Notes: generated from the letters alone by a model not told the origin. A stretch of DNA of 17,452 bases from Piromyces finnis finn (GCA_002104945.1 MCFH01000204.1:1-17452); one strand, 5' to 3'; numbered from the stretch's first letter, positions 1 to 17,452 are shown. Made by a program: numbers and translations.

Positions 1-3000
1 ACTATCTCTTGGACTCGAGGTGATCAATCTTCCGACATTGACCATGCTCTTATCAATTCGAAGATGAAAGATCTTATTCACTCAGGATCATTTATAAATA
101 ATTTTTATCCTGTATCAGACCATAAGCCACTTCTTATTAATGGTAAAATTATTCCTATGGAAGATTTTTCTAATGACTTTAATGTTCCTAAGAAAATTCG
201 AAATGGAATAGATTAAAATGTATTGAGGAAAAGGAATCTATTCTCAGTCATAATAAATTCCAAATACTTTCAGCAAAATTCAACGATCCTAATGTTTCTA
301 CAGATGAACTTTCCAAAGAGTTTACTTCAACTGCTTTTTCAATTGCAGACGAGCTCAGTTATACATTCAGCAAAATAATGTTATAAAGTCTTCATTTTCA
401 TATTTCACAACAAATTTTTAATCTTCAAAAAATCAAAATGAAGTTGTATAAGAGATTTAAAAAGAAAGAATTTATGATATAGATGAATTATTAAAAGAAT
501 TAAAATCTACCGTAAGCTCATTGATTACATCCACAAAAGATGTAATGAATTTAGGAAGCAAGAATATCTTCATTGGATTAAAACAGGATGTGAGTATATG
601 AAGAGTCATAATCCTAAGAAGGCCTGGAAATGGATCAAGAAAACTGCAAAAATAGGAAAAGATTCTTTCTTTATTGCTCAACCAATTAAAAATAAAAATG
701 GAGAATTAGTTGTTGCTACAGAAGAACAACTAGAAGTGTGGCATGATCATTTCGAAAACCTTGCATCAGATCCAAGTGGTGTAAGTCTTGATTTGGAGCA
801 TTGGTATGAAGAACCAATGAATAAACGTTTTTCACTTCCTATGCTTGATGAGTGGGATATCAACCAAGATATTAGTATTGATGAAGTCAAGTCAGCTATC
901 CTCTCTACTCCAAATTATAAAGCATCAGGTCCGGATGGTATTCCAATTGAATTTTACAAAGCATTAATTCCATCAAGTAATGATTCTAATAATGCTACAG
1001 ATAATAATTCTTCCGGTAATACTACTTCAGATAATGATGCTCATGGTTTAAATTTTATTCTTAAATTATTCAACCGTATTTGGGATGGAGACTTCCCCAA
1101 CTCATGGAATGAATCCAGTATTGTTTCTATTCCTAAGAAGGGAGATTTGACAGATTGTGATAACTATCGAGGTATATCACTTATCAATAATGGCATTAAG
1201 TTGATTTCCAAAATTGTCACACTAGAATCTCAGAAAATGGTTAAAGAATAATTTCATTAGACCTGAACAATTTGGTTTTCGAAAAAAGGAAGAAAGTATC
1301 AGTCTTTTCTTTCAATCCAAGAATATGCCGTAGACGTCAATTAGATAATAAAGAGACATATTTGGCCTTTTTAGATCTCAGGAAAGCATACGATTCAGTC
1401 CCAATCGGTAATATTCTCCATAATTAGATTGTTTAGGAATCCGAGGTAAGAGTTTACAATTCATCAAAAATTTATATTTAACATCTAAGGCTAATGTCAA
1501 ATTAGATGGACAATTCTCGAAATCTTTTGATGTGAAGAAAGGAGTCCGTCAAGGATGCCCTCTTTCTCCTATTCTCTTTAATCTCTTTATTAATGATATA
1601 TTTAAAGAGTGTGAAGATCTCGGAGTCAGTTTAGGTGACACTCGATGCTGTGGTGGACTTTTTGCAGATGATATAGTTATTTGTGCTCCAACAAGAGAAT
1701 ACTTAAAAAAGATGCTTAGAAGAGTTAATGAATGGGCCTTGTATAATGAAATGGAATTTGATATCCAGAAATGTTCAACGATGGTGATTCGTCCTGAATC
1801 AATAGAAAATCAGAACAAGAGAGATCCAACATTTTACTTAGCAGGACAACCCATTCCAACTACTGATTGCTATACTTATCTTGGTGTTCCATTTGATAAG
1901 AATCTGTCCTTTAAACCAGTAATTAAAGCTCTTAATAACAAGGTTTTGAAAGGGCTTTTTCTCAGTCAGTAAATTCTTAAGAAATCCTAATATTCCTATT
2001 CCTTTCAAAAAACTAGTACTTAACTCACAAGTGATTAGCAGAGTTTCATACTTTGCACCATTACTTGGATCCAACAAAGCTAGGTCTAGGATTGCTCAGA
2101 AGCATGTTAACAAAGGAATACGATGGATTGCCGGAGTTCATAAAGCTGTATCGTTTATATCTTTATACTCTATCTCAAAAGATTTGAATATTCCTCCATT
2201 GTCAGCCAAATGTGCATTAGCTCAGGTTAGATGTTTTAACAAATGGAAAAACTCAAATTGTATTATCTCACACCTTGTCAATTACATTCCTAAATTTAGA
2301 AAATACACGTGGTGCAAATCAAGTAGGACACTTGATAAAAATTAAAGAAACATGGAGATGTTAAAGCAGTTAAAACTTTTATTGGAAAGATCTAAAGGGA
2401 ATTCAATCAAAGCGCAATATTATGATGATAATAAATTTATTGAAACTAAAGATTTTATTAAATTATGTTATGAGTACCCAGAGTTTGCCTATGGCTTCTA
2501 CTGGCTATTGAAAGCAAGAAGCGGATACAAGTTGGATGCTAGAGTTGCCAAAGCTGCCAAATTTGTTGATCCAGTTTGTCCTAACTACTGTCCATGTTGC
2601 AAGTGTGGAGATCAAAGTATTAAACATTGGGTTATTAGATTGTCCAACATTTAGAGATATCCGTATTAAACATTATGATTCTATAGTCCATCTTTTAATT
2701 TTTTCAGTCAACGTAATTCCAATAGTCCTATCAATAATAATGAAATTGATAATATCAGTAGAGATAGCAATAACAGTAATAGTAATAGTAACAATAGTAA
2801 TAATAACAATAGTAGTAATAGTAATAATAGAAATAGTAATAATAACAATAGTAGTAATAGAAATAATAATATTAGTAATGATAGCAATAGTGGATGATAA
2901 TAATTCTAATTTAGATAGTAATTTAGTTAATGATAGTAATAGTTCTAATAATCCGGTGAATATTAATGTGTATGATTATTCTAGTGTGTGCAGTAAAATA

Positions 3001-3285
3001 TTTAAATTCCTTCTTGGGGGAAGAAGTTTTAACAATATCAATTACAATTCAAGGGAATGGAAAGAACTTTGTAAGCGTCAGATTCAATCTAGTACTAATG
3101 AAGGAACACCATTCTTGACTGTAACCGCGGAACTTCTAACCCAAAATCATGCCTTTTGCTATTGGCCAGCAATGGTCAATGTTCAAAAGGTTTGAAGCAA
3201 CATCAAGAGCGTCAATGCTGAAGAAACAGTAAGACAGGCCAGGAGGGCCAGCGCAACCAATGGAGATCATAATTTTGTTCCATGA
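1..3285 (+). CDS. APE endonuclease (C-terminal part) / reverse transcriptase / CCHC polyprotein, interrupted by many 1-nt frameshifts
   Basis: Joining frames gives KASGPDGIPIEFYK, NYRGISL, RPEQFGF, AFLDLRKAYDSVP, GVRQGCPLSPILFNLFINDI, GGLFADDIV, YTYLG and CPCCKCGDQSIKHW..LDCPTF. A probable stop TGA is at 3283-3285. Confidence 0.9.
2730..2960 (+). repeat. AAT/AGT-rich low-complexity tract inside the family A ORF (Asn/Ser-rich in the likely true frame)
   Basis: Runs of aatagt/aataac/agtaat; reads SNNSNSNSNNSNNNNSS... in one frame. Confidence 0.85.
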
Positions 3286-3518
3286 CAAAATTTTTGATCT
3301 TTGGCTCGGTGTCCCATTGGAAGTCAAATACAATTATTATACTTTAGTATGATAGTGGCTTTCTTACTTTAATTAAAATTACTAGAATACATTATACCCA
3401 ATTTTTATTCATTTGTGTTTATTTAAACATATTTTTTTTTATTTTATATTTAATTTTTTTTATTACATGTATTATAATTTTAATTAAATTAATAATAAAG
3501 TTTAAAATATTTGATGCC

Positions 3519-3521
<3 letters not shown>

Positions 3522-3550
<29 letters not shown>
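3522..3550 (+). repeat. Poly(A) tail of family A copy 1
   Basis: A29 immediately after an AT-rich 3' UTR. Confidence 0.85.
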
Positions 3551-3553
<3 letters not shown>

Positions 3554-4300
3554 AAAAGCTAGTACTTAACTCACAAATGATCATCAGAGTTTCATATTTT
3601 GTACCATTACTTGGATCCAACAAAGCTAAGTCTAGGATTGCTCAGAAGCATGTTAACAAAGGAATACGATGGGTTGCCGGAGTTCATAAAGCTGTATCGT
3701 TTATATCGTTGTACTCTATCTCAAAAGATTTGAATATTCCTCCATTGTCAGCCAAATGTACGTAAGCGCAAGTTAGATGTTTTAACAAATGGAAAAACTC
3801 AAATTGTATTATCTCATACCTTGTCAATTACATTCCTAAATTTAGAAAATACATGTGGTGCAAATCAAGTAGGACATTTGATAAAAAATTAAAGAAACAT
3901 GGAGATGTTAAAGCAGTTAAAAACTTTTATTGGAAAGATCTCAAAGGAAATTCAATCAAAGCGCAATATTATGATGATAATAATTTATTGAAACTAAAGA
4001 TTTTATCAAATTATGTTATAAGTACCCAGAGTTTGCCTATGGTTTCTACTGGCTATTGAAAGCAAGAAGCGGATACAAGTAGGATGTTAGAGTTGCAAAA
4101 AGCTGCTAAATTTGTTGATACAGTTTGTCCTAACTACTGTCCATGTTGCAAGAGTGGAGATCAAAGTATTAAGTATTGGTCATTAGATGTCTAACATTTA
4201 GAGATATCCAGTAACAATAATTTTAATAATATTAGTAATGATAGCAATAGTGAAGATAATAATTTTAATTTAGATAGTTAATAATAGTTATAGTTCTAAT
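3551..4300 (+). mobile_element. Family A copy 2, left fragment (post-RT region to the Asn/Ser tract)
   Basis: Colinear with ~2004-2950 of copy 1 (tcaaaaagctagtacttaactcacaa vs tcaaaaaactagtacttaactcacaa), with scattered substitutions and a ~200-bp deletion after gagatatcc. Confidence 0.95.
4286..4300 (+). repeat. Left target-site duplication AGTTATAGTTCTAAT
   Basis: Identical 15-mer at 9653-9667, directly after the family B poly(A). Confidence 0.93.
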
Positions 4301-5696
4301 TCTCTCTTGGGTACGTGCCTTCATTTATTTAATAAATGTAGTTTCTCAAGGGGTCTACTCATGCTCATGGTACTGAGAGAGTAGAAAGAATTAAATCCAA
4401 GTATTGCGCAATGGATACTTGGTTAGTCTATATTTGGAATATTATTAGGACTAAGCTCATGTACTGAGCGAACAGAGTTGATAATTTGAGTGTTAGTTGT
4501 TATATCATATATCCCTTACACCTTCAACTTATTTTTAGATAGTAGTTGCTTTAACAACTTTTATAACATATTATTTTAAACTTAAAATTGTTTGATTCGG
4601 TAGTATTAAATACTGATTTTGAATATTTCTTGATTTCATTTTTATTTTAGCTTTCATCGATAATTTGTTATCCCAGTTACTACTTATTCTCTTGTTCTTT
4701 TATTCCTTTTTTATTCTTTATATGTTGATTAGTCAGATAGTTTTGTTTTTTCAGTTAGTTTGTTATTCCTTTCATTATTCTTGAGTTTCGTGTGGGTGCA
4801 GCTTTCATTACTATAATCATATTTAATCTTTTATTTTTTTCTATTTTTATTATTTTCGAGGGGCGCGGCTTTTTTATTTTTCCTTTATGATTTTATATGA
4901 TTCTAGTAATATCTTTTTTTATTTCTTATTTTTTTGTAACTCTAGATTTTCCAAGGAATCTCTTTCTACTAACATTCTTTTGTATACTTTTTCATCTCTT
5001 TCTATATATATATATATTCTTATACTTTATATTATATGTATATTTTATATATCTGTATAACTTAATTAGGTTATTATGGACTATTATGGTAAGTATTAAC
5101 ACCTTTTTTTTCTTTAACATTTCTATTATCAAAGCTTCTATCCTGGAAAATCGAGTATTCTATTTTTATATTGTAAATACTACTCTTGTTTCAATTTTAT
5201 CTTTAAAAAAAAAAAAAAAAAAAATTTTATTAGTTTACCCAAAATTCTTCAACTTTTTTCCATTATTTTTGATATAACAACTTTTCACTCTTATTATCTC
5301 CTACCTTACAACATAAACACCTAAATGAATGTTCAATTTCAACAATCAGAATCAACACAATATAATAATCATCCAATAAATTATCAATTCTTATAATATA
5401 AAGAGCTTTCAAAATACAGTTATAATACAGAAATCCAAAGTGATAGATATTCATAATTTATCTTCCCGTTTAAAGTCTTCAGTAGAGTTAGAACTAAGTT
5501 TGTCAACAACTTAGCCCACTTTTCCAGTTATAAAATTTAAAATATTGTTTGACAAATAATCCACTTGCTATATAATATATCCGTCTTTACTATTATTATT
5601 TTTATTTTACTATATATTTTATTTCATTATAATATTATATCATTATATCAATACTTCAAATTATTAATATCTATTGTCATAATAAGTTCTTTCAAA

Positions 5697-8600
5697 ATGA
5701 ACAATACCAATTGTACTGTACCTACCTTACGACGTGGTCTTCGTTTCTTCGGATCTAACTCCAATAAAATCATATCTAATTTTTATCCATGATCTTAGTT
5801 CATGGTCAAAACAACGACTAATGGAATTTCTTTTAAAGACATTCAACCTTTCAATGATATTCTTCAATCCCTCACCAAAAAATATTCACAATCACTCGGT
5901 ACCTATTTCATTCTTAAAGTCAATGGAAAATGTCCGCTTAAAGCCATGTTACTTATACACTCACTTTCTAAAAAACTCCCATCTCTAGTAAAATATCTTG
6001 GAAATTCATTAATAAGCTCAAAAACAATAGATCATACAAAAACAAACGATCTATCAAATCTACTACTGGATGCTAGATTAATTGCCTTTGATGAACTTGA
6101 TAAGTGGTTAACAAACGCATAACAAATTCAACCACCCAGCTATCCTTGTAGGAGACTTTAATATGTCAGCTATTAAAATCAAATCTTATATATCACAACA
6201 CTTCCCGGATTGGACTATGGCTGAGTTAACTGGTAATAATTTTACCTGGGAAAAAGGATCTAAATCTTCATGCATTGATCATATTATATACAACAAAGCT
6301 ATGACAGAACACATAAACAAATCTTCAGTTTGTGAAGTTTTCCACGATGTTTCTGATCACAAACCGATCCTTGTGTCTTGTAAAAAAGACTCTTCGGATG
6401 GTTTCAAAAAGCCTAAGAAGACCTTTAAGTGGTCAAGTCATATCTGTAACACAAAGTGTTCTGACATTCTTACTAGTAATCGCTTTGCTGTTCTAGCTTC
6501 CGAGCTTGAAGCTAATTGCGATAGCCTTTCGGCTGACGATATGGTTTCAAGATTTTTAGATACTTCCAAAACTATAGGTAAAGAAATAAAAGCCATTGTG
6601 CCTGCAGATTTAAAAGGTCCAGCATTCCATTGCCCTCAATACATCAAAAACTTATCACATGAAAAACACCTGGCTTACAAAAATATTAAACCCCTTTCAG
6701 ATTGCGCTGACATGGAAAATTATCTTAACCAGTTCTCCATATACCAAAATCTATGTAATACCATCAAAAAGGTTAAGAGCAAATTCAGATCCAATCTCTA
6801 TAAAGCTAATATTGTTTCTATCGGTAAACATTTTATTGATAAAAGCTTTAGACAAGGTTGGAAAGGCTTAAAAAACTTGCCAAACCAAGTTATTCGTCCT
6901 CCCATGTTTCAACTATTAAGGACAAGAATGGCAAGGATTTATTTACTCCTCAAGAACAATTAAAACGTTGGGCTGAACATTATGAAAATCTTGCATCTGA
7001 TGTTACAAATCACAGCTTAAATCGTGGTTACTGGGAAAGAGCCTTCCAATTCAACCATATCAATCAAATAGCATGGGATATAAATGGTCCCATTTCTATT
7101 GAGGAAATTAGAAATGTTGTTCTGTCAATGAAGAATAACAAGGCTCCAGGTCCCGATGGTATCCCAATTGAATTTTTCAAAGCTTTCTTTTGTAACGAAG
7201 AACTGGAGAAAGAACATAAGTCTGCTGGAAATTGTCTTAAATTAATTTTTAATAAAATCTGGAATGGTTCCTTTCCTTTGAAATGGAACTCTGCTTCCAT
7301 TGTTTCTATTCCAAAGAAAGGCGATCTTTCAGACTGTAATAATTATCGTGGTATTTCTCTCATCAATGTAGGTCTTAAAATTATTTCAAAAATTGTAACT
7401 AATAGAATTTCAAAGTATGCTCTTTCTCATAATTTTATAAGACCTGAGCAATTTGGTTTTCGCAATAAAGAAGAATGTATTAGCTTATTTATTTCCATTA
7501 GAGAAATCTGTCAAAGAAGAAAATTTAAAGGAAAAGCCACTTATGTCGCCTTTCTAGACCTTAAAAAAGCATACGACTCAGTTCCTATTTTAATATCCTT
7601 ACAAAGTTATATAAATTAGGTATACGTGGTAAATGTTTTGATTTTCTCAATAATCTCTACTCTACCTCTAAAGCTCGTGCACGTTTCTTGGATATGCTTT
7701 CCAATGAATTCCCTATAAACCGTGGTGTAAGACAAGGATGTCCTCTTTCTCTTATACTGTTTAACCTCTTTATCAATGATATTTTAAATAAATGTGAAAG
7801 GCTTGGGGTTAGCTTAGGTAATAAACGTTGTTGTGGTGGCCTTTTCGCTGATGACATTGTTTTGATTGCTCCTAGTAAGAAGAACCTTCAAAGATGCTCA
7901 ATCTAGTCCTTGATTGGGCTAATTTAAATGAAATGTCTTTTGGAATAAATAAATGTGCAACTATTGTTGTTAAACCTATCAACTTTAATAGATCCCTAGT
8001 TATGTCGACCCAACATTTTACATCGGTATGTACTCGATTCCAAAGGTTTCTTGCTATACTTATCTTGGAATCCCATTCGACGAAGATCTTTCTTTGACTC
8101 CTATTCTGTCTAATATGTACAAAAAAGTTCAGAATTCTTTATTCTCTTTTAAGAACTTCCTCACCAACAATTGTGTTCCTATTGGCTTAAAAACATAGTA
8201 ATTCATTCTTATATTTTAAGCAAAGTCTCTTATTATGCTCCTTTGCTTGGTTCCAACAAAAATAGAACTAGAAGAGTCCAATCTCTTATCAATACTGCTG
8301 TTTTATGGAGTGTCAATAGCTTTCACAATAAAAGTTTTAATAACAAAGATTTTGTTTTTGAACGAAATTCATTTATTAGTCTGTATGCTCTTACAAGAGA
8401 TATGAAGATTCCTACCCTTTCAGGTATTTGTGCTGCGCAAACAAGTGAAATGCTTTGTTAAATGGAGAAAATCAAATTGTATAATTAAAGATCTCGTCCG
8501 ATCTATTCCTCCCATGTCTCATTACTCTTGGGCCAAAGAATCTTGTTCACTACATAAGAAGCTTATGAAAATAAATATTAAAAGTACTAAAGATATTAGA

Positions 8601-9366
8601 GAATATTATTGGAATAATAGTAGCCTAAATAATGGAAGTAAAGCCCTCAGATATACTAACAACAAATTCCTTAATTCAAATCGCCTAATGCATATCGGTC
8701 TCAACAAACCTCACTTAAATTTAGGAATTACCTGGATTATTCGTATTCGATGCGGTTATGAAAATACTACCCGAATTGCTATTGCCAGTAATAGAGTTAC
8801 TCCTGACTGCCCTCGTGTCTGTCCATGTTGCGGATATGACGAACAATCTTTTTACCATTGGATATTAGAATGTTCTGCATTCTCTGAATACAGAGCTTCT
8901 TCACTTAGCTTTCTTGACGATCTTTTTACCCTTTTTACAATAAATATAAGAATCAATTCATCACATACTTACTCCCCGAAACGGAAGTAAGAAAAATAAT
9001 TTATAACTATATTTTTACGTTCCTTCTTGGTGAACTTTAGCTTATGATGAGCTACAAATCGATAAGGCGGAACAAAGACATTTGAATGAACGCTTTACAG
9101 TTCATCGGGTCTCATGTTCCATATGTAGGGGTCTCGCGGCTTTTCTTACTAAAACAATCCCTATCATTAGTAGCTCTATGAAGCTACTTTTGATAGGTTT
9201 AGTAAGACACCTAACGTAATCAAGAGCGCCGACGTCGTACCGATATGGCAAAGGAACATTTCCAATGTTCCGTACACAGGGTTCAATGTTAGTATTTCCT
9301 CAAATTCGAATGAAAACATTATGAACTCATGGGAGAGTTTAGTGGACACCACACTATCATACCTGA
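5697..9366 (+). CDS. Family B polyprotein (N-terminal region / partial APE / RT / CCHC), frameshifted; both ends approximate
   Basis: GDFN at ~6151, KAPGPDGIPIEFFK, NYRGISL, RPEQFGFR, AFLDLKKAYDSVP, GVRQGCPLS, GGLFADDIV, YTYLG, CCHC at ~8820-8877. The ATG at 5697 and TGA at 9364-9366 are best guesses across frameshifts. Confidence 0.85.
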
Positions 9367-9628
9367 TGTTACTTCTTTTTTTTATTTCATTTAATTTATT
9401 AGGTAGGGACCAATCCCACACAGTACAAATTGCAGAGTTCATTGAACTTTTATGCAACTTAAATAATTATTTTATATTATTTTATATTTATATTTTTATT
9501 TATATATATATTTTATTATTTTTATTTATTATTTATTATATCAATATCAATATGTATTATCACCTAATGTTATGTAATATCTCAAATTAAATAAATAAAT
9601 AAAAAGATGTGTATTCTCTTCCTAGTCT

Positions 9629-9652
9629 AAAAAAAAAAAAAAAAAAAAAAAA
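9629..9652 (+). repeat. Poly(A) tail of the family B element
   Basis: A24 directly followed by the right TSD. Confidence 0.9.
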
Positions 9653-9667
9653 AGTTATAGTTCTAAT
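9653..9667 (+). repeat. Right target-site duplication AGTTATAGTTCTAAT
   Basis: Identical to 4286-4300. Confidence 0.93.
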
Positions 9668-10011
9668 AATCCGGTGAATATGTGTATGATTATTCTAGTG
9701 GGTGCAATAAAATATTTAAATTCCTTCTTGGGGGAGAAGTTTTAACAATATCAATTCCAATTCAAGGGAATGGAAAGAATTTTGAAAGTGTCAGATTCAA
9801 TCGGACACTTACGAAGGAACACCATTCTTGACGATAACGGTAAACGCGGAACTTCTAACCAAAATTATGTCTTTTGTTATTGACCAGAAATGGTCCATGC
9901 TCAAAAGGTTTAAAGCAATAACCATGAACATAAATGCTGAAGAAACAGTAAGACAGGAGGCCAGCGTAACCAATGGAGATTATAATTTTGTCCCATGGAA
10001 AAATTTGATCT
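9653..10011 (+). mobile_element. Family A copy 2, right fragment (ORF C-terminus); 3' UTR and tail missing
   Basis: Colinear with ~2935-3300 of copy 1 (tagttctaataatccggtgaata ... ttttgtcccatggaaaaatttgatct). Similarity stops at about 10011. Confidence 0.93.
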
Positions 10012-10072
10012 CTAAGGCTTATATTATAATCCAATTCATATGTATTAAAAAATTTTTTAAAAAAAAAAATAG

Positions 10073-10188
10073 TTTAATAGAATAGAAAGGAGTCTAACGA
10101 ATTCTAGTATTTTTGGATTGAAATTTAAAAAAAAAAAAGTTTTAATAGAATAGAAAGGAGTCTAACGAATTCTAGTATTTTTGGATTG

Positions 10189-10219
<31 letters not shown>
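10073..10219 (+). repeat. Two identical 54-bp units, each followed by an A-run
   Basis: tttaatagaatagaaaggagtctaacgaattctagtatttttggattgaaattt at 10073-10126 and 10141-10194, followed by A12 and A25. Confidence 0.9.
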
Positions 10220-10222
<3 letters not shown>

Positions 10223-10240
10223 TTATTAAATTTTATGAAT

Positions 10241-10960
10241 ACTCTGGGTACTTATAATTTAATAAAATTTTTAAGTTTCCTTATATTTGTTATTATCCCT
10301 TTTTACTGAATTGATATTTTTTGTGTATTTAAAATTTAAAAATTAATATTACTCTGGTTTAATAAAATGGTTCTAACATCCTATTCTGAAATTCTAGTAG
10401 TGACAATTTTTGGTATTAATTTGATTCCATTCTTCAAGTATAGACAGGGGAAAATCATTTATTTGTTGCTTCTATATACCAATACTCTAAATCATGGCTT
10501 ATACCTTTTAGCGTCAGATCATTCTAGTTGTTCTTTGATAGCAATAACTAGTTCTCCATTTTATTTTTAATCAGATGAATAATAAAGGAAACATTTTTTT
10601 TTTTTTTCAATTTTAGTAGTTTACTTAATTCATTTCTAATTCTTCATATAATTATATAACTCAATCTATTTTAATTCAATGAAGATATTTCTATTTTCTA
10701 TACTCATACATATTTTGTGAATGATATCAATAAAATCAAGACATTTCTTAACCTTTATAATAAATTATCTAGTTTATCTCTTTTTAATTCCTTATAGATT
10801 TTCATTTTGATTTTCTAAGGATTAAGATTACTTTGATATACATTCTCAAGAGGAATCAGAAATATTATTTAAAGGAATTAGTGTTTTAAAAAATTCAATC
10901 AGAATATCTTGAGGATTTGATATTTATAATTTGGATTGTTGATTTGATTTTAGCTAAACT
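10241..10960 (-). pseudogene. Decayed, internally deleted family A LINE relic in antisense orientation (upper boundary approximate)
   Basis: Reverse complement matches copy 1/2 in order: 10661-10690 ~ 561-590; 10510-10572 ~ 686-745 (attaaaaataaaatggagaactagttattgcta); 10380-10430 ~ 1191-1240 (aaaattgtcactactagaat); 10241-10257 = 4016-4032 (ttataagtacccagagt). Confidence 0.8.
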
Positions 10961-11689
10961 TTTTTTATTTTTTAATAGTATCAAATAGACTAAAACCTTT
11001 ATCATTATTCTAATTAAAATTAGAATACATATGTATTTAAAAAATAAATTTAATCCTACACAAAAAATAAATAAAACATCGGTATAATATATTCTAGCAA
11101 TTTTAATTAAAATAAAAAGGCTACTATTACACTTGGAGTATAATAATCGTATTTTCCTTCTATTATAAATTTAAAATAGTTGGATATTTAAAAAAAAAAA
11201 AAAAGATTAAAAAATATAAGGAGAATCCAATAAAAATAACAATAGTTCAAACATTAATAATAAAACCAGTGTAATAAGAATAAAAATTAGTATACATTAA
11301 ATTGATAATATTAAAAAAAAAAAAAAAAAGGAAAGAGTTTATAATAAAATTAGTGAATTAAGATTTTAAAAATATAGATAAATATTAAACTTTTTAAAAT
11401 TAATTTCATTGAAATTGAGATAGACAGCTATATTCTTTATAGTAAATTTAAAATATATATAAGAAAATAAACTTTTTTTACACAATCACTCTTATATTTA
11501 ATAATAAAAATATATTATTTATATTTATTTTTTTTTAATTAAATTAACACTTTTATATTATGTATATATACAATAAAATTTTTATAGGCTGAAATAATAA
11601 TATTGCTAAAATAATAATAATAAAAAAATCTATTGCAATGTCGTTTAAAGCCTTTTAAGATTAGTAATAATTTTTCTATATTAAATGAT

Positions 11690-13667
11690 TTAACTTTTCC
11701 AGATTTTGTTACATTCTGAAATGTAATCTTCACATTTCTTGTAATTACCATCTTGAACAGTATTCCAACAATTACCAGCATCTTTATAACACTTATCTGC
11801 CATTGATTGCTTACAACTCCAATCATTACTACCACAACTGAAGTAATCACCTCCAATAGTTGAACTTGAAGCTTCAAATGATGGGGCATCGAATGATGGA
11901 ACTGATGGTATATCAACTGGAGTATCAATTGGTGTATCAATTGGTGTATCGATTGGAGTATCAATTGGAGTATCAACTGGAGTATCAACTGGAGTATCAA
12001 CTGGAGTATCAACTGGAGTATCAACTGGAGTATCAACTGGAGTATCAACTGGAGTATCAACTGGAGTATCAACTGGAGCAGCAAAGTTTGGGAAACCACT
12101 ATTGTTATTACCACCACCGAATCCTGGGAAATTTGGGAAACCTCCATTTCCTCCATTGTTATTGCCAAAACCTGGGAAACCTCCATTTCCTCCATTGTTA
12201 TTACCAAAACCTGGGAAACCTCCATTTCCTCCATTGTTATTACCAAAACCTGGGAAACGCCATTTCCTCCATTGTTATTGCCAAAACCTGGGAACCACCA
12301 TTTCCTCCATTGTTATTACCAAATCCTGGGAAACCACCATTCCTCCATTGTTATTACCAAATCCTGGGAAACCACCATTGTTACCACCAAAGTCACTCCA
12401 TTGTTACCTGGGAAGCCACCATTACCGTTATTGTCATTATTTGGAATTGATGGAGTATTATCGACTTCTGGAACTGATGGAACATCATTATTTTCTGGAA
12501 TAGTTGGAGTTTCTGGAGCTTGTGGGTTCTGGATTAGATTGACCAGATGAGGTTGGCTTATTAGTTGGAGTAACTGGTCCAGTTGAGCCAATACCCTCAT
12601 TAAACCACTAACAACTTGAGGAGCTTTAACTTGATAAGTAGTACGATCAATAAGTCCGAAAGTTCACCAGAACCTTCAAAAAGACCATTATCCCAAACAA
12701 CACATGGAACACCAATTGCCTTGGCACCTCTAGTGTAGGCTTCAGCCCATTTAGCACGTTCAGCATCATTGTTACGACTCATAGCACCATTTCACCAATA
12801 ATTACAGCTATATTTTTTACTAGTGAATTTACTTTTAATTAAATTAAAGAGTTGATCTAAATCAGAAAGTGTTACTAAAGTAGAACGGCACCATCACATT
12901 ATTTAAGGCAAAAATTATATGGTGTATAAGCGTGAAGTGAAACGATTAAATTACTATCACCAGATGGGGAATTGATAAGCATTAATAGCACCATCCATAG
13001 TAGTAGCAGCATAAGTTGGAAGCATTAAATGACGTTTTGGGATTGTTTACCACCAGTAGCACGAATAGTTTTAACGAAAAGAGCATTCATTTTATTTAAC
13101 GAAGTCCCATCCTTCACTATCACCACCAGTCCATTCAACACGGGTTCCAACCTTTCTTGGTTCATTCATACCTTCAAAATTAAATGTTCATCATAATCAG
13201 CAAATTCAGCAGCAATTTGTTTCCAAATAGCAACTAAAATAGTTTGGTGCTTTTTTGAAGATTATTTGAGAAAGCATAGTTCCATTTTTCATGATGAATA
13301 TTTAAAATTACGTAAGCCCCTTTTTATAACCATATCTACAACTTCCGTGAACTCTCTTCATCCAAGTTGGATTAATTTTATAATCAGGACCTTCACCAAA
13401 GTGACCATCCCATGTTGTTGGAATACGGAAAGTATCAAAACCTTCTTTCATTAATGCAGTGAAAAGACCTTCTGTTGTCTTAACATTACCCCAACAGGTT
13501 TCAGAAGCTGTTGGATCAGCATTATTATCTAAATTATCACAACTAGCATCTAAAGTATTACCTAAACTCCAACCAATTTTCATATTTCTTGTTAATTCTA
13601 TTGATGACATTGCATGGGTACCAACGATAGATAACCCAGCTAATAATATAGCATTTAAAAATCTCAT
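11690..13667 (-). CDS. Secreted GH5 endo-beta-1,4-glucanase (GH5_4-like) + Gly/Asn/Phe repeats + PVDT linker + six-Cys C-terminal module; several 1-nt frameshifts
   Basis: Signal peptide MRFLNAILLAGLSIVGTHA; GWSLGNTLDA, FRIPTTW, ILNIHHE, EGMNEP (acid/base Glu at 13161-13163), SLHAYTPYNF, IIGE (nucleophile Glu at 12791-12793), VWDNG. Ends ...ECNKIWKS-TAA (stop 11690-11692). No introns are needed to join the frames. Confidence 0.93.
11910..12077 (-). repeat. 14 x 12-bp tandem repeat encoding a P(V/I)DT linker
   Basis: Unit ccagttgatact on the minus strand, 14 copies counted. Confidence 0.93.
12117..12440 (-). repeat. 39-bp tandem repeat encoding GGFPGFGNNNGGN (about six full copies plus partial ones)
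   Basis: Plus-strand unit ggaaacctccatttcctccattgttatt(a/g)ccaaa(a/t)cctg. Three units are one base short. Confidence 0.9.
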
Positions 13668-14052
13668 GTTTATTTATTAGTGTTTTAGATTATAACTATA
13701 TACAATATTATATTTTCTGTTATTTAAATTATTTATAATTATTTTAAAGTGTTGATATATAAGATATTTAAGTTTAATATTAATATTTTATTTTAAATAT
13801 TGAATTCACTTTTATATTCTATTTATATTAAATAATTAATAAATATATAATTTAAATAAATTTTTATACAACATATAAATAAGTATAAATAAAGAATTTC
13901 ACTTGTAAAAAAATATAAATAGAAGATTATTTTTTTATTTATATATTGAAATCTTTTTTATTAATTATTATAATGTATATTTTTTTAAGATTATAACAAT
14001 ATAATTTTTAATAATATAATATTAAATTAATTTTTTATTGTCTTTTTAAAAA

Positions 14053-14061
14053 TGATTGGCT
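14053..14061 (-). promoter_or_regulatory. Candidate CCAAT box (AGCCAATCA) upstream of the GH5 gene
   Basis: Matches the NF-Y/HAP consensus RRCCAAT(C/G)R on the GH5 sense strand, ~390 bp upstream of the ATG, in an otherwise GC-free region. Confidence 0.4.
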
Positions 14062-14340
14062 GATTTTAAAAATTAAAGTTTCTATTTTTAATAATTTTTT
14101 TTTGATTCTATATTAATTTTACCGCAATTCTTATATATAACCGCAACACCATTAATTTCCAAATAATAGCTATATTCTATTTTAATAACAAAAACTATAT
14201 TCATAATAAATTATAGATATATTAGCAATTAAAAATAAATTAAATGTTATATAAAATATCATATATTAATAAATATTAAGAAAGTACAAATTGCAAATCA
14301 ATGACACATCATGAATACAAAGTAACACTGATGAAACATA

Positions 14341-14399
<59 letters not shown>

Positions 14400-14410
14400 A
14401 ATAAATAAAT
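14341..14410 (+). repeat. (TAAA)n microsatellite, about 17 units
   Basis: Direct reading. Confidence 0.95.
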
Positions 14411-15212
14411 TATGTTATAAAAAACATAAAAAGTATAAATTTATATTAAACTAACTTTTATATTATTAAATTAAATTTTAATTTAATAATTAAACAATAT
14501 GATGTTCAAAACTAATATTCATAATTTTGTTAGCAATATAGAATTTATAATGCTAGATAAATAAATACTATGAAAAACATTTTGTAAATTTTTAAAAATA
14601 AATATTATTTCATCTTATATTAAAAAAAGTAATATTAGAATTTAATGAAATAAAAGAAGGATAATAGTGAAAATAATTATTATAAATAGTAAATCACATA
14701 AAAACAGGTTTATTAATATTTTATGTAGGTTTATAAAATTTTTTTTTTCTTTTTTACGAAAAAGCTTTACAAATTTATTAAATAATATATTGATTTTTAT
14801 AAAGTATAATTAGTTTAGAATTTTATAATTCTATCTTATTCTAACTACTAAAGAAAATTTCAAACATTAAAAAAAAAAAAAATTTATTTTTCACCTATAA
14901 ATGTAATATTTAATAGTTACATTAAAATAGATAATTATAGATATTTCTAATTAAATTATTAGTTTTTAAAGTAGTTAGAAAAGAAAAATGAAAATAACAT
15001 TAATAATACAAATAAAATTCATATAATTTTATTTAAAATGAAAAAAAAGAAAATAATAATGCTTTTATTAACAATTTTTATTTTATTATTATCTTTGTTG
15101 TTGTTATTTTATTATAAGTTATGATAAAATATTAATTGTAATTTTATTATTCTAAGTAACGCATTTTTATTTTAAAATCTTTTAAGATTTTAAAAGCATC
15201 CCCAATAATTAA

Positions 15213-16942
15213 TTATATACAGTGACAATTAATTATGTCTTTTTCTGATGATATATTATAATGTGAGATAGTTTTTAATATCATCATTAATTTCTGTAAT
15301 ATTACTAATATTATTAACTTTATTAGCATCAAGAATAGAAAAAATTTTTTCATTGAGAGATTTAAGTTTTTCATTTTTTAAGAAAATAGTTTCTTACATT
15401 CATTATTTGATTCTGTCGCTTGAATAGGAATACTTTCAATACTATTAATAGGTGTTATAAAATCTTTATTTAATATTCACCATCAATATTATTTCTCTAA
15501 CTAAATGTCAAATGTTGTGAAAGAACTTGGTATTTTAAATATGAGTCTTTGGATTAATACCCTTAAGAGTGAGTATAGTTGTATCTGGAGGTAATTTCTT
15601 TTAGACTACTTTTTTAGTACGTTGAGGACAAGATACGGATATTGTAATTAACATTGTTTCTAATGTTTGCTCTTTATCTTCTTTTTTTGTTAATATAATA
15701 TCATGATAGTTTTGCAATTCTTTGAATTTTGGGTGCTTCAATGCAAATTCTTCATCAGTCCAATTCAATTTTTGCTTCTCTTGATAAGCATAATTGATAT
15801 AATATCTTTCACAATCAAATCGATCGCTTTTGCTTATAGAACTTCCATTAAATTGTGTTAATTTACTTATTTGTCCTATAACAAATATTCTAAAATTAGA
15901 TGCTGGTTCCACTTTATCACCTATAGGATTTCTTGAAAGTCTTAACTTTTGTAGAGATGGGAATTTATCCAATTCTAGTATAGTTTCCCAATTATCAATT
16001 AAATTATTATTTAAATTTAATGTATCTAATTTTTTAAATGTTCCGGACTATACTGTATTGATTTGATTTTATTATAATCAATTTTTAATGTTTCTAAAGA
16101 TGGTAATTTACCTAAAGTATCTTCAATTACTTTCCAGGAATCAAATTTGTTGTATTCAAAATTTATTGATTGTAATGTTGAAAATTGATTTAATTGAAGG
16201 GAAGGGGATAAGCTACTTAAATTGTTAAAACCTAAAGAAATATTTTCTAGATTTATAAAATAAGGTTCTAGATTGCAAACAGTTTTCCATTCCTCTATTG
16301 ATTTATTTAATGATAGAGTCTTTATACTTTCAAATTTGGCATTTTTATTTCTAATTATATTATTTAAAGATGTAGGGTCAATTTTATTTTTATTTAAAAA
16401 TAATACATTTAAATGCTCAAGTTCATCTAAAATGTCAAAAACATCATCCCAGTGAGTAAATAGATTTTCTGATAAATTTAATTCTTCAATACTTGGACAA
16501 ATATTTTTTATCTTGCCTTTTGATTCGTTTTCAGCAAATGCTTTCTCAATATTTTGTAAATCTAAACCTACTTCAATTAATTCATTTAAATTACTTTGTT
16601 TTTTATCAATTTTTTCAAAACCAACAGTTTCAACTACTTTACCCCATACAATTGGTTCTGCATTTTTATCTTTTTCTTCTTTTATTATATACTTTTTATT
16701 AATGCTTCTTGAAAAGATTGCCCAACCATTAATAATGGTGAATCTTTCTTAACAAATGAACCTGAATTTTCTACAGTAGGAGTAAAATATTTTACACCTT
16801 TATATTCTCCATTATGTTTTCCTCTACTTGGATCATCCCATTGAATACCTAACCATATTACTTTGCTATTGGTAACAGGTCCCTCATATAAAACAATACC
16901 TAAATTATTATCATAATTAATTCTTTTTCCTATCAATGACAT
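15213..16942 (-). CDS. TBCE: Tubulin-specific chaperone / tubulin-folding cofactor E (CAP-Gly + LRRs + C-terminal ubiquitin-like domain); frameshifted, 3' end approximate
   Basis: CAP-Gly WLGIQWDDPSRGKHNG; VETVGFEKI; LRRs (LNLSENLFTHW, LNLNNNLIDNWETILELDKFPSLQKLRLSRNPI); ISKSDRFDCERYYI; UBL KKLPPDTTILTLKG ... EINDDIKTISHYNI, with stop at 15213-15215 after frame correction. Confidence 0.88.
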
Positions 16943-17452
16943 CTTTTATAATTAAATCGAATAAATTAATTTTTTGAATTACGAGGAAAATATTGCTTTA
17001 ACAAAAATATTAATTTATTTATTTTTTAAATTATCGTGCTTAATGTACTAATATTATTAACAATTAAATATTTATTATTTTATTATCTTTATTGGTATAT
17101 AAAATGAAATTTGATTTAAAATTCAAATTTCTATTATTTATTTATGCATACATATATATATAATAATGATTAAATATTAAAAAAAAAAAAAATCTATTGT
17201 TGTAATATTATTTTTAAAATTAATTAAATTTAAGGAATAAATAAATTATAAAAAATAAAAAAAATAAAAAAATTAATTAAAATATTAAATTAAATATATC
17301 CATTATTTATATGTGGTATGATAATAAAATATAATTATAAAAAAGAATTTTTTTTTTAAATAATTTATCCTTTAAAATATTAAATAAATAAATATCTTTA
17401 AAAAAATAATAATTTCCTTTATCATTAATAATAAATAAATAGTTTTTAAAAA

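Follow-up and report, generated by a model that had tools for sequence, protein, structure and literature searches.

A six-cysteine module at the end of a GH5 endoglucanase

The window analysed here is a whole contig of 17,452 nucleotides (MCFH01000204.1 of GCA_002104945.1, referred to below as C118) from the anaerobic gut fungus Piromyces finnis. On its minus strand lies a gene for a secreted GH5 cellulase which ends, after a long low-complexity linker, in a small module with six cysteines. This module represents a new family, and by kind it is a non-catalytic terminal module of modular secreted enzymes. No published description of it was found in a full-text literature search, although this absence is weak evidence as most subscription papers lie outside the search.

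Structurally, the module comprises 54 residues at 11693-11854 (minus strand), as delimited by translation, family profile and an AlphaFold2 model. In the translation, a lead-in of six residues before the first cysteine, GGDYFS (11854-11837), forms the start of the conserved domain. The following 48 residues run from the first cysteine codon (11836-11834) to the last residue of the tail (11695-11693), and a TAA stop codon (11690-11692) is found five residues past the last cysteine. A preliminary description, made from this DNA alone, had placed a six-cysteine tail of 48 residues, with its stop, at 11690-11836. The tail is indeed present on the minus strand, and the spacing given for it, C-x6-C-x7-C-x6-C-x11-C-x6-C, is exact on recount.

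The window is a redundant, unpolished and error-rich duplicate of a section of another contig, C90, in the same genome (56.46 Mb, 232 contigs). In the DNA alignment, window positions 1-17416 are colinear with G000:C90:145666-163099 at 99.0% identity, with 7 mismatches and 164 gap positions in 150 openings, i.e., the pattern of an unpolished long-read contig. Within the GH5 gene, the two copies differ by about 25 single-base insertions or deletions (indels) and about two substitutions. The reading frame of this gene changes repeatedly in the window, while the C90 frame consists of 661 uninterrupted codons. As the window duplicates C90 and the differences are nearly all indels, the frameshifts in the GH5 gene are therefore assembly errors. 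A pseudogene can be ruled out, given that about 96% of the differences from C90 are indels and that they occur along the entire contig. The module segment itself is identical in both copies. For any frameshift or apparent pseudogene in the window, the C90 copy is the reference to check against.

The intact C90 protein has 659 residues and consists of a signal peptide, a GH5_4 domain, a linker of about 280 residues and the module (residues 612-659). In the window, the gene starts with an ATG at 13667 on the minus strand, and the first 19 codons (13611-13667) by inspection encode a predicted signal peptide, which is hydrophobic and ends in THA. The catalytic domain, delimited by Pfam and PDB matches, follows at approximately 12591-13610 (minus strand). 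It is broken by indels in the window, where the first open reading frame (ORF) of the gene covers 13308-13667(-), and is intact on C90. The linker occupies 11855-12590 (minus strand) and is likewise frameshifted in the window; it is recognised from the translation, from its tandem repeats and from the intact C90 twin. Tandem-repeat analysis identifies two repeats in it: a 12-nt repeat in 14 copies, encoding PVDT/PIDT (11911-12078), and a 38/39-nt repeat in 6.4 copies, GFPGFGNNNGGNG (12134-12379).

The Pfam family PF00150 matches residues 52-329 of the intact C90 protein at E 7.5e-70 and the first window fragment of the broken gene at E 1.1e-12. The closest solved structures in the PDB are EglA from Piromyces rhizinflata (3AYR, 1.5e-141) and CelD from P. 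finnis (8GHX, 2.5e-138), both of which belong to GH5_4 (PMC10485095). By its Pfam match and its closest structures, the host protein is predicted to be a GH5 subfamily-4-like endoglucanase, in agreement with the GH5 cellulase of the preliminary description. In CelD, this catalytic type is combined with a double dockerin (PMC10485095). The GH5_4 type is thus found with either a double dockerin or the six-cysteine module, as expected of alternative localisation tags.

A conserved family in anaerobic gut fungi

A six-frame search of the P. finnis genome with a 56-residue query returns 34 matches, and 26 of these copies were taken into a family alignment (A1). Eight positions are invariant in A1: C7, C14, K15, C22, C29, C41, C48 and I51. 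In addition, Asp11, Trp30 and Trp52 are conserved in at least 90% of the copies, and the conserved aromatics are Y4, W12, Y23, W30 and W52. The consensus of the module reads Y.SC...DW.CK..KS..CY.....CW..(9-12)..C..IN..CSKIW. When the A1 profile is searched against the genome, it detects 33 strong sites (E 7e-22 to 7e-11) and four weak ones; the match in the window lies at C118:11699-11848 (E 3e-17). After subtraction of three duplicates on redundant contigs, the genome holds about 30 modules in about 25 proteins. The contig pairs C172/C171 and C30/C193 look like further redundant duplicates, because identical module matches are found on both contigs of a pair.

Outside this genome the family is small. 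The A1 profile was searched against 1.84 billion proteins, one representative for each 50%-identity cluster of about 15 billion proteins, and it finds only 35 clusters (best E 8e-36, 17 of them at E<=1e-10). A word-index protein search with the module region returns one close orthologue (P0045); short modules share few exact words. The members with a source name come from Neocallimastix, Anaeromyces, Pecoramyces and Piromyces sp. E2, all Neocallimastigomycota, and the others are contigs of JGI/IMG or ENA assemblies. Judged from the named members, the family appears to be confined to anaerobic gut fungi. With these matches the tail is clearly no orphan, and the recurrence on other carbohydrate-active enzymes (CAZymes) and on scaffold-like proteins, which had been raised when the tail was first described, is found both in the genome and among the protein clusters.

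The module is also under purifying selection. The C90 gene was compared with two orthologues recovered from assemblies (L036, L037), and the ratio of nonsynonymous to synonymous substitution rates (dN/dS) was calculated according to Nei-Gojobori. Among the three orthologous GH5 genes, dN/dS is 0.03-0.12 in the module, 0.08-0.23 in the GH5 domain and 0.46-1.4 in the linker, where the module figure is rough because its synonymous sites are few and saturated, but the contrast to the linker is still clear. By these ratios the linker evolves nearly neutrally. The low dN/dS of the module against that of the linker argues that the tail is a selected, functional domain. That the tail belongs to a genuine conserved domain family is thus close to certain.

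Predicted fold and disulphides

The AlphaFold2 model of A1 has a mean predicted local distance difference test score (pLDDT) of 88.1 and a predicted template modelling score (pTM) of 0.68. It consists of an extended lead-in (positions 1-11) followed by two helices (12-32 and 39-49), in line with the probably helical domain of the preliminary description. According to this model, the module would be an independently folding domain of about 52 residues, in which a short strand-like N-terminal lead-in precedes two antiparallel helices. Cys22 and Cys29 in helix 1 and Cys41 and Cys48 in helix 2 both form i,i+7 pairs, and with this spacing the pairs would be located on the facing sides of the helices. 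Three disulphides probably staple the module together. From the fold and the spacing, C3-C6 and C4-C5 are predicted to form a twin C-x6-C clamp between the helices, while C1-C2 would join the lead-in and the beginning of helix 1. The even count of invariant cysteines also suggests internal rather than intermolecular disulphides. The invariant Lys15 is located on the same helix face, one heptad ahead of Cys22, and it therefore probably packs against the conserved terminal Ile-Trp.

No relative of known function is found by sequence or by structure. The Pfam scan of the module gives no family at E<=1, and the PDB sequences give zero matches to the module profile at E<=10. When the model of a single module is searched against the PDB with Foldseek, nothing is found below E=1 (best E 2.3), and a wide VIA-align search reaches Z<=5.3, with only TPR-like, designed and other generic hairpins. 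In the ESM Atlas, the search by shape returns generic helical fragments only and the search by features gives no usable match.

In its general design, the predicted hairpin would resemble the twin CX9C CHCH proteins, the plant alpha-hairpinins and the Cs-alpha/alpha toxins, which also have two antiparallel helices with facing cysteine pairs; for the module this arrangement is taken from the model and the spacing. However, it has CX6C instead of CX9C or CX3C, it contains a third cysteine pair and an N-terminal lead-in, and it is extracellular and fused to enzymes.

Comparison with known cysteine-rich modules

Several known families have a similar size, location or cysteine content. For CBM1 (PF00734), there is no Pfam match on the tail at E<=1, nor on the other members at E<=10. 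The Pfam CBM_1 model detects 94 true CBM1 sites in the genome, none of which coincides with a module (0/94), and an hhalign comparison of the module profile A1 with an alignment of the CBM1 domains of the genome (A5) gives a probability of 0.9%. The fungal dockerin family PF02013 (CBM_10) does not match the module either; the same scan does find CBM_10 in a GH10 carrier protein (L039, see below), but not on the module of that protein. CBM18/hevein (Chitin_bind_1) is rejected by the Pfam scan at E<=1 and by the number of cysteines, six in the module versus eight. The distinction of the tail from dockerins, CBM1 and CBM18, which was made in the preliminary description, is thus upheld.

CFEM, which has an eight-cysteine pattern, differs in the same manner from the six cysteines of the module and gives no Pfam match. 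An ShK-like domain is rejected as well: there is no Pfam match at E<=1, and the last three cysteines of the module are spaced x11 and x6, while the C-terminal arrangement of ShK is CxxxCxxC. Nor is the tail a C-terminal sorting signal of the KDEL type, as 1-6 variable residues follow the conserved Trp and N-terminal copies exist. Two family members from Anaeromyces robustus have names in UniRef that point elsewhere, P0005 (ORX84523.1, 'CBM1 domain-containing protein') and P0016 (ORX87060.1, 'CFEM domain-containing protein'). However, a Pfam scan at E<=10 finds no CBM1 in the former and hmmscan at E<=10 finds no CFEM in the latter. The only cysteine-rich parts of both proteins are six-cysteine modules.

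The closest parallel in the same fungi is the fungal dockerin (NCDD, CBM10-like), which is also a cysteine-rich, non-catalytic terminal module of about 40-50 residues on secreted CAZymes. The fungal dockerin is a small beta fold, while the module is predicted to be helical, occurs in a single copy past very long linkers and can be found together with a dockerin. Like CBM1, it is a small, disulphide-bonded module, rich in aromatics, that follows a linker on fungal cellulases. However, CBM1 has four cysteines, the spacing and the conserved residues differ, and the module is predicted to be helical and not beta.

Enzymes that carry the module

According to Pfam, GH5 is found with the module in seven unique genes of the genome. 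The other catalytic domains identified by Pfam are GH11 (P0009), CE2 esterases and a PL1 pectate lyase (L043). A GH10 xylanase at G000:C171:304636-306507 (L039:1137-3008) has a CBM10 dockerin at its N-terminus (residues 39-76) and the module at its C-terminus. The gene for this protein is located about 12-15 kb from two GH5-module genes. As the dockerin and the module exist on one GH10, the two tags are not simply interchangeable. The suggestion in the preliminary description that the module takes the place of a dockerin therefore holds for the GH5 of the window, but not as a strict alternative. Taken alone, this GH10 is compatible both with a tether and with a carbohydrate-binding module (CBM).

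The module could be a new all-helical CBM for plant cell-wall polysaccharide, which would replace CBM1 and target free, non-cellulosomal enzymes. It is found where CBMs sit, past a linker on GH5, GH10, GH11, CE2 and PL1, and it has the five conserved aromatics. Its combination with a dockerin on the GH10 is a common cellulosomal layout, and one member has been automatically named after CBM1 in UniRef. However, this label is not reproduced by any of the three comparisons above, and several of the conserved aromatics adjoin cysteines and may be core residues. Subtilases, an Agd3-like deacetylase and many proteins without any catalytic domain carry the module too, and we know of no all-helical hairpin CBM. 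Overall, we consider such a CBM unlikely.

The Agd3-like deacetylase is encoded at G000:C200:747674-749548 (L040:1175-3049, minus strand) and ends in the module. Pfam identifies Agd3_CE at E 1.6e-88, together with partial matches to CBM87 and Agd3_C. Since no start is obvious in the ORF, there is likely to be a further exon upstream. In Aspergillus, Agd3 acts on a self-made fungal polysaccharide, and the presence of this carrier hints that the gut fungus may make and modify a galactosaminogalactan-like exopolysaccharide. The two S8 subtilases with the module, P0022 and P0031, by eye also contain a hevein-like cysteine stretch. Many further carriers lack a catalytic domain; in these, the signal peptide is followed by Thr/Lys/Pro-rich repeats (KTLPTTTS-like), which number from tens to hundreds, and then by the module.

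Terminal copies, dumbbells and arrays

Within the proteins, the location of the module is almost fixed. Of the 26 aligned copies, 22 end 4-10 residues short of the stop, and the remaining 4 are N-terminal copies. The latter belong to a distinct subtype (NPYLVC ... EIW.Y.G, versus ...KIW-stop in the C-type) and directly follow the signal peptide. N-type copies occur in five proteins of the genome, and all five also contain a C-type copy. Two such double-capped ORFs are located on C156, one a confirmed CE2 and the other of 912 residues. Three further proteins are dumbbells, in which the signal peptide is followed by an N-type module, about 800 residues of near-perfect (GKTLPVTSS)n repeats and a C-type module, with no other domain. 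Examples are G000:C178:1076859-1079675 (L032:2860-5676, 939 codons) and C178:235612-238695 (L034:3613-6696, 1028 codons). A compact layout of this kind is found in P0001, a metagenomic protein of 160 residues, which has only a signal peptide, an N-module, a 40-residue linker and a C-module.

A small, disulphide-rich domain that is found strictly at the ends, either at the mature N-terminus or a few residues from the stop, and that always adjoins long low-complexity linkers could be a mere cap without a ligand. Such a protease-resistant, disulphide-locked cap would shield the linker ends from gut exopeptidases or aid folding and secretion. However, it is not evident what purpose a linker without a functional far end would serve on an enzyme, and both surface-exposed positions and the distinct subtypes are kept across genera. 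Further, internal arrays of the module exist. We therefore regard a purely protective cap as very improbable.

The layout of the dumbbells, with a cysteine-rich module at either end of a very long repeat rich in Thr, Ser and Pro, is similar to that of gel-forming mucins. In mucins, N-terminal VWD assemblies and a C-terminal cystine knot flank the PTS domain, and the ends mediate end-to-end assembly. The similarity is one of layout only, as the dumbbell modules are ten times smaller, helical and without homology to those of mucins (no Pfam match).

Arrays of divergent modules are found in P0016, P0019, P0026 and in a protein encoded on C174 of the P. finnis genome, with 3-6 module matches per protein. 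The C174 protein (G000:C174:146931-150179; L038:1432-4680) is secreted and has 1083 codons, with four units of 139 residues that are separated by long (PVVDE)n spacers. It ends in a basic Lys/Thr tail and has homologues in Anaeromyces and in JGI/IMG and ENA assemblies. Each unit is a pair of divergent six-cysteine modules, the first of which is split by an insertion of 27 residues. The unit is predicted as a single all-helical domain (pLDDT 92.7, pTM 0.76), and the pTM suggests that the two modules may be held in a fixed arrangement. Foldseek gives no PDB match for this two-module unit, and the VIA search reaches Z<=6.7 with the second module alone covered.

These architectures raise the question of whether modules bind each other. 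In a dockerin-independent docking element, the caps would pair N-type with C-type, homotypically or with scaffold-like arrays. The N-terminal and C-terminal copies are distinct conserved subtypes, the N-type copies of the genome all occur in proteins that also have a C-type, and the arrays carry 3-6 divergent modules, with a two-module unit predicted as one compact domain. All of this would fit such pairing. However, if N-type modules bound C-type ones, proteins with caps at both ends would use up their own sites, and the annotation of array proteins such as ORX87060.1 does not name them as scaffoldins. The prediction of a complex between the N-type module at L032:2932-3117 and the C-type module of the window scores 0.01, against a mark of 0.34, and is evidence neither way. 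We consider a docking element of this kind decidedly unlikely.

The module could also be read as the missing fungal 'cohesin', which would bind the CBM10-type dockerins of other enzymes. The family does have multi-copy array proteins, and the partner site of the fungal dockerins is still undefined (PMC8262932). However, the GH10 has a dockerin as well as the module, and most carriers are single-copy enzymes and not scaffolds. Nor did any link to the ScaA scaffoldins come to light, although no direct comparison with them was made. We regard a cohesin as extremely improbable.

A putative attachment module

Carbohydrate binding, cell-wall anchoring and alternative docking had all been named as functions in the preliminary description. 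We suggest, with a slight preference over the alternatives taken together, that the module is a generic attachment or tethering module. The family caps the C-terminus of secreted proteins, and in some of them also the mature N-terminus, past long and probably O-glycosylated linkers. In this manner it would tether the fused cargo, here a GH5_4 endoglucanase, to the fungal cell surface, to the extracellular matrix or to other members of the family. The binding function and the kind of ligand are what we infer here. It is less likely that the module recognises the substrate of its own enzyme.

Four observations point to a tether. First, the partners, which include proteases, the Agd3-like deacetylase and mucin-like non-enzymes, are too diverse for one substrate, which argues for a generic tether and against a substrate-specific CBM. 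Second, the double-ended and the two-module proteins can be understood only as bridges or cross-linkers. Third, the linkers exceed the usual length of CBM linkers by far and are similar to the stalks of cell-wall proteins. The overall layout is also that of the glycosylphosphatidylinositol-anchored cell-wall proteins, with a signal peptide, an effector domain, a long and probably O-glycosylated stalk and a C-terminal element. However, the C-terminus of these proteins is a hydrophobic anchor signal, while that of the module carriers is a hydrophilic folded domain. Fourth, the GH5_4 type carries either a double dockerin (CelD) or the six-cysteine module, in keeping with alternative localisation tags. 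The prediction of the array pair as one all-helical unit also fits attachment.

Other observations weigh against a tether. The conserved aromatics could form a carbohydrate-binding face, as in CBM1, rather than a core. A long linker followed by a terminal module is the layout of ordinary enzyme-CBM fusions too, and the GH10 with both dockerin and module is explained no less well by a CBM than by an anchor. The lack of any relative of known function in Pfam, in the PDB and in the fold searches likewise speaks for caution.

A more far-reaching version of attachment would be a second, dockerin-independent extracellular assembly system, built from this one lineage-specific six-cysteine helical module. 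The C-type caps would then be found on enzymes and proteases, the N-type plus C-type pairs on very long mucin-like tethers, and the paired-module arrays would serve as hubs. Through binding of the modules to one another, or to a shared component of the matrix, the enzymes would be displayed on the rhizoid surface. We regard an entire system of this type as rather improbable.

Other features of the window

Downstream of the GH5 gene, the intergenic DNA is AT-rich and contains a 68-bp unit repeated 2.2-2.6 times (88-97% matches) at 10033-10206, flanked by long poly(A) runs. The gene upstream of the GH5 gene, at about 15200-16300(-), is intact on C90 (L031:5914-6999(-)) and encodes a leucine-rich-repeat protein. 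This neighbour has a ubiquitin-like-looking C-terminal end and by eye resembles tubulin-folding cofactor E.

Implications

In anaerobic gut fungi, the positioning of enzymes is understood only for those that bear dockerins, and the receptor site of these has itself yet to be defined (PMC8262932). With the six-cysteine module as their common mark, about 25 secreted proteins per genome form a second set, which includes cellulases, xylanases, esterases, a pectate lyase, proteases, a matrix-polysaccharide deacetylase and mucin-like tethers. The carrier proteins are now annotated as 'hypothetical' or are mislabelled as CBM1 or CFEM, and recognition of the family bears directly on their annotation. 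If the module is an attachment tag, it would provide a very small (about 50 residues) and disulphide-stable tag for engineered enzyme assemblies, and for the gut fungi themselves it would represent a new route of enzyme display or of matrix building.

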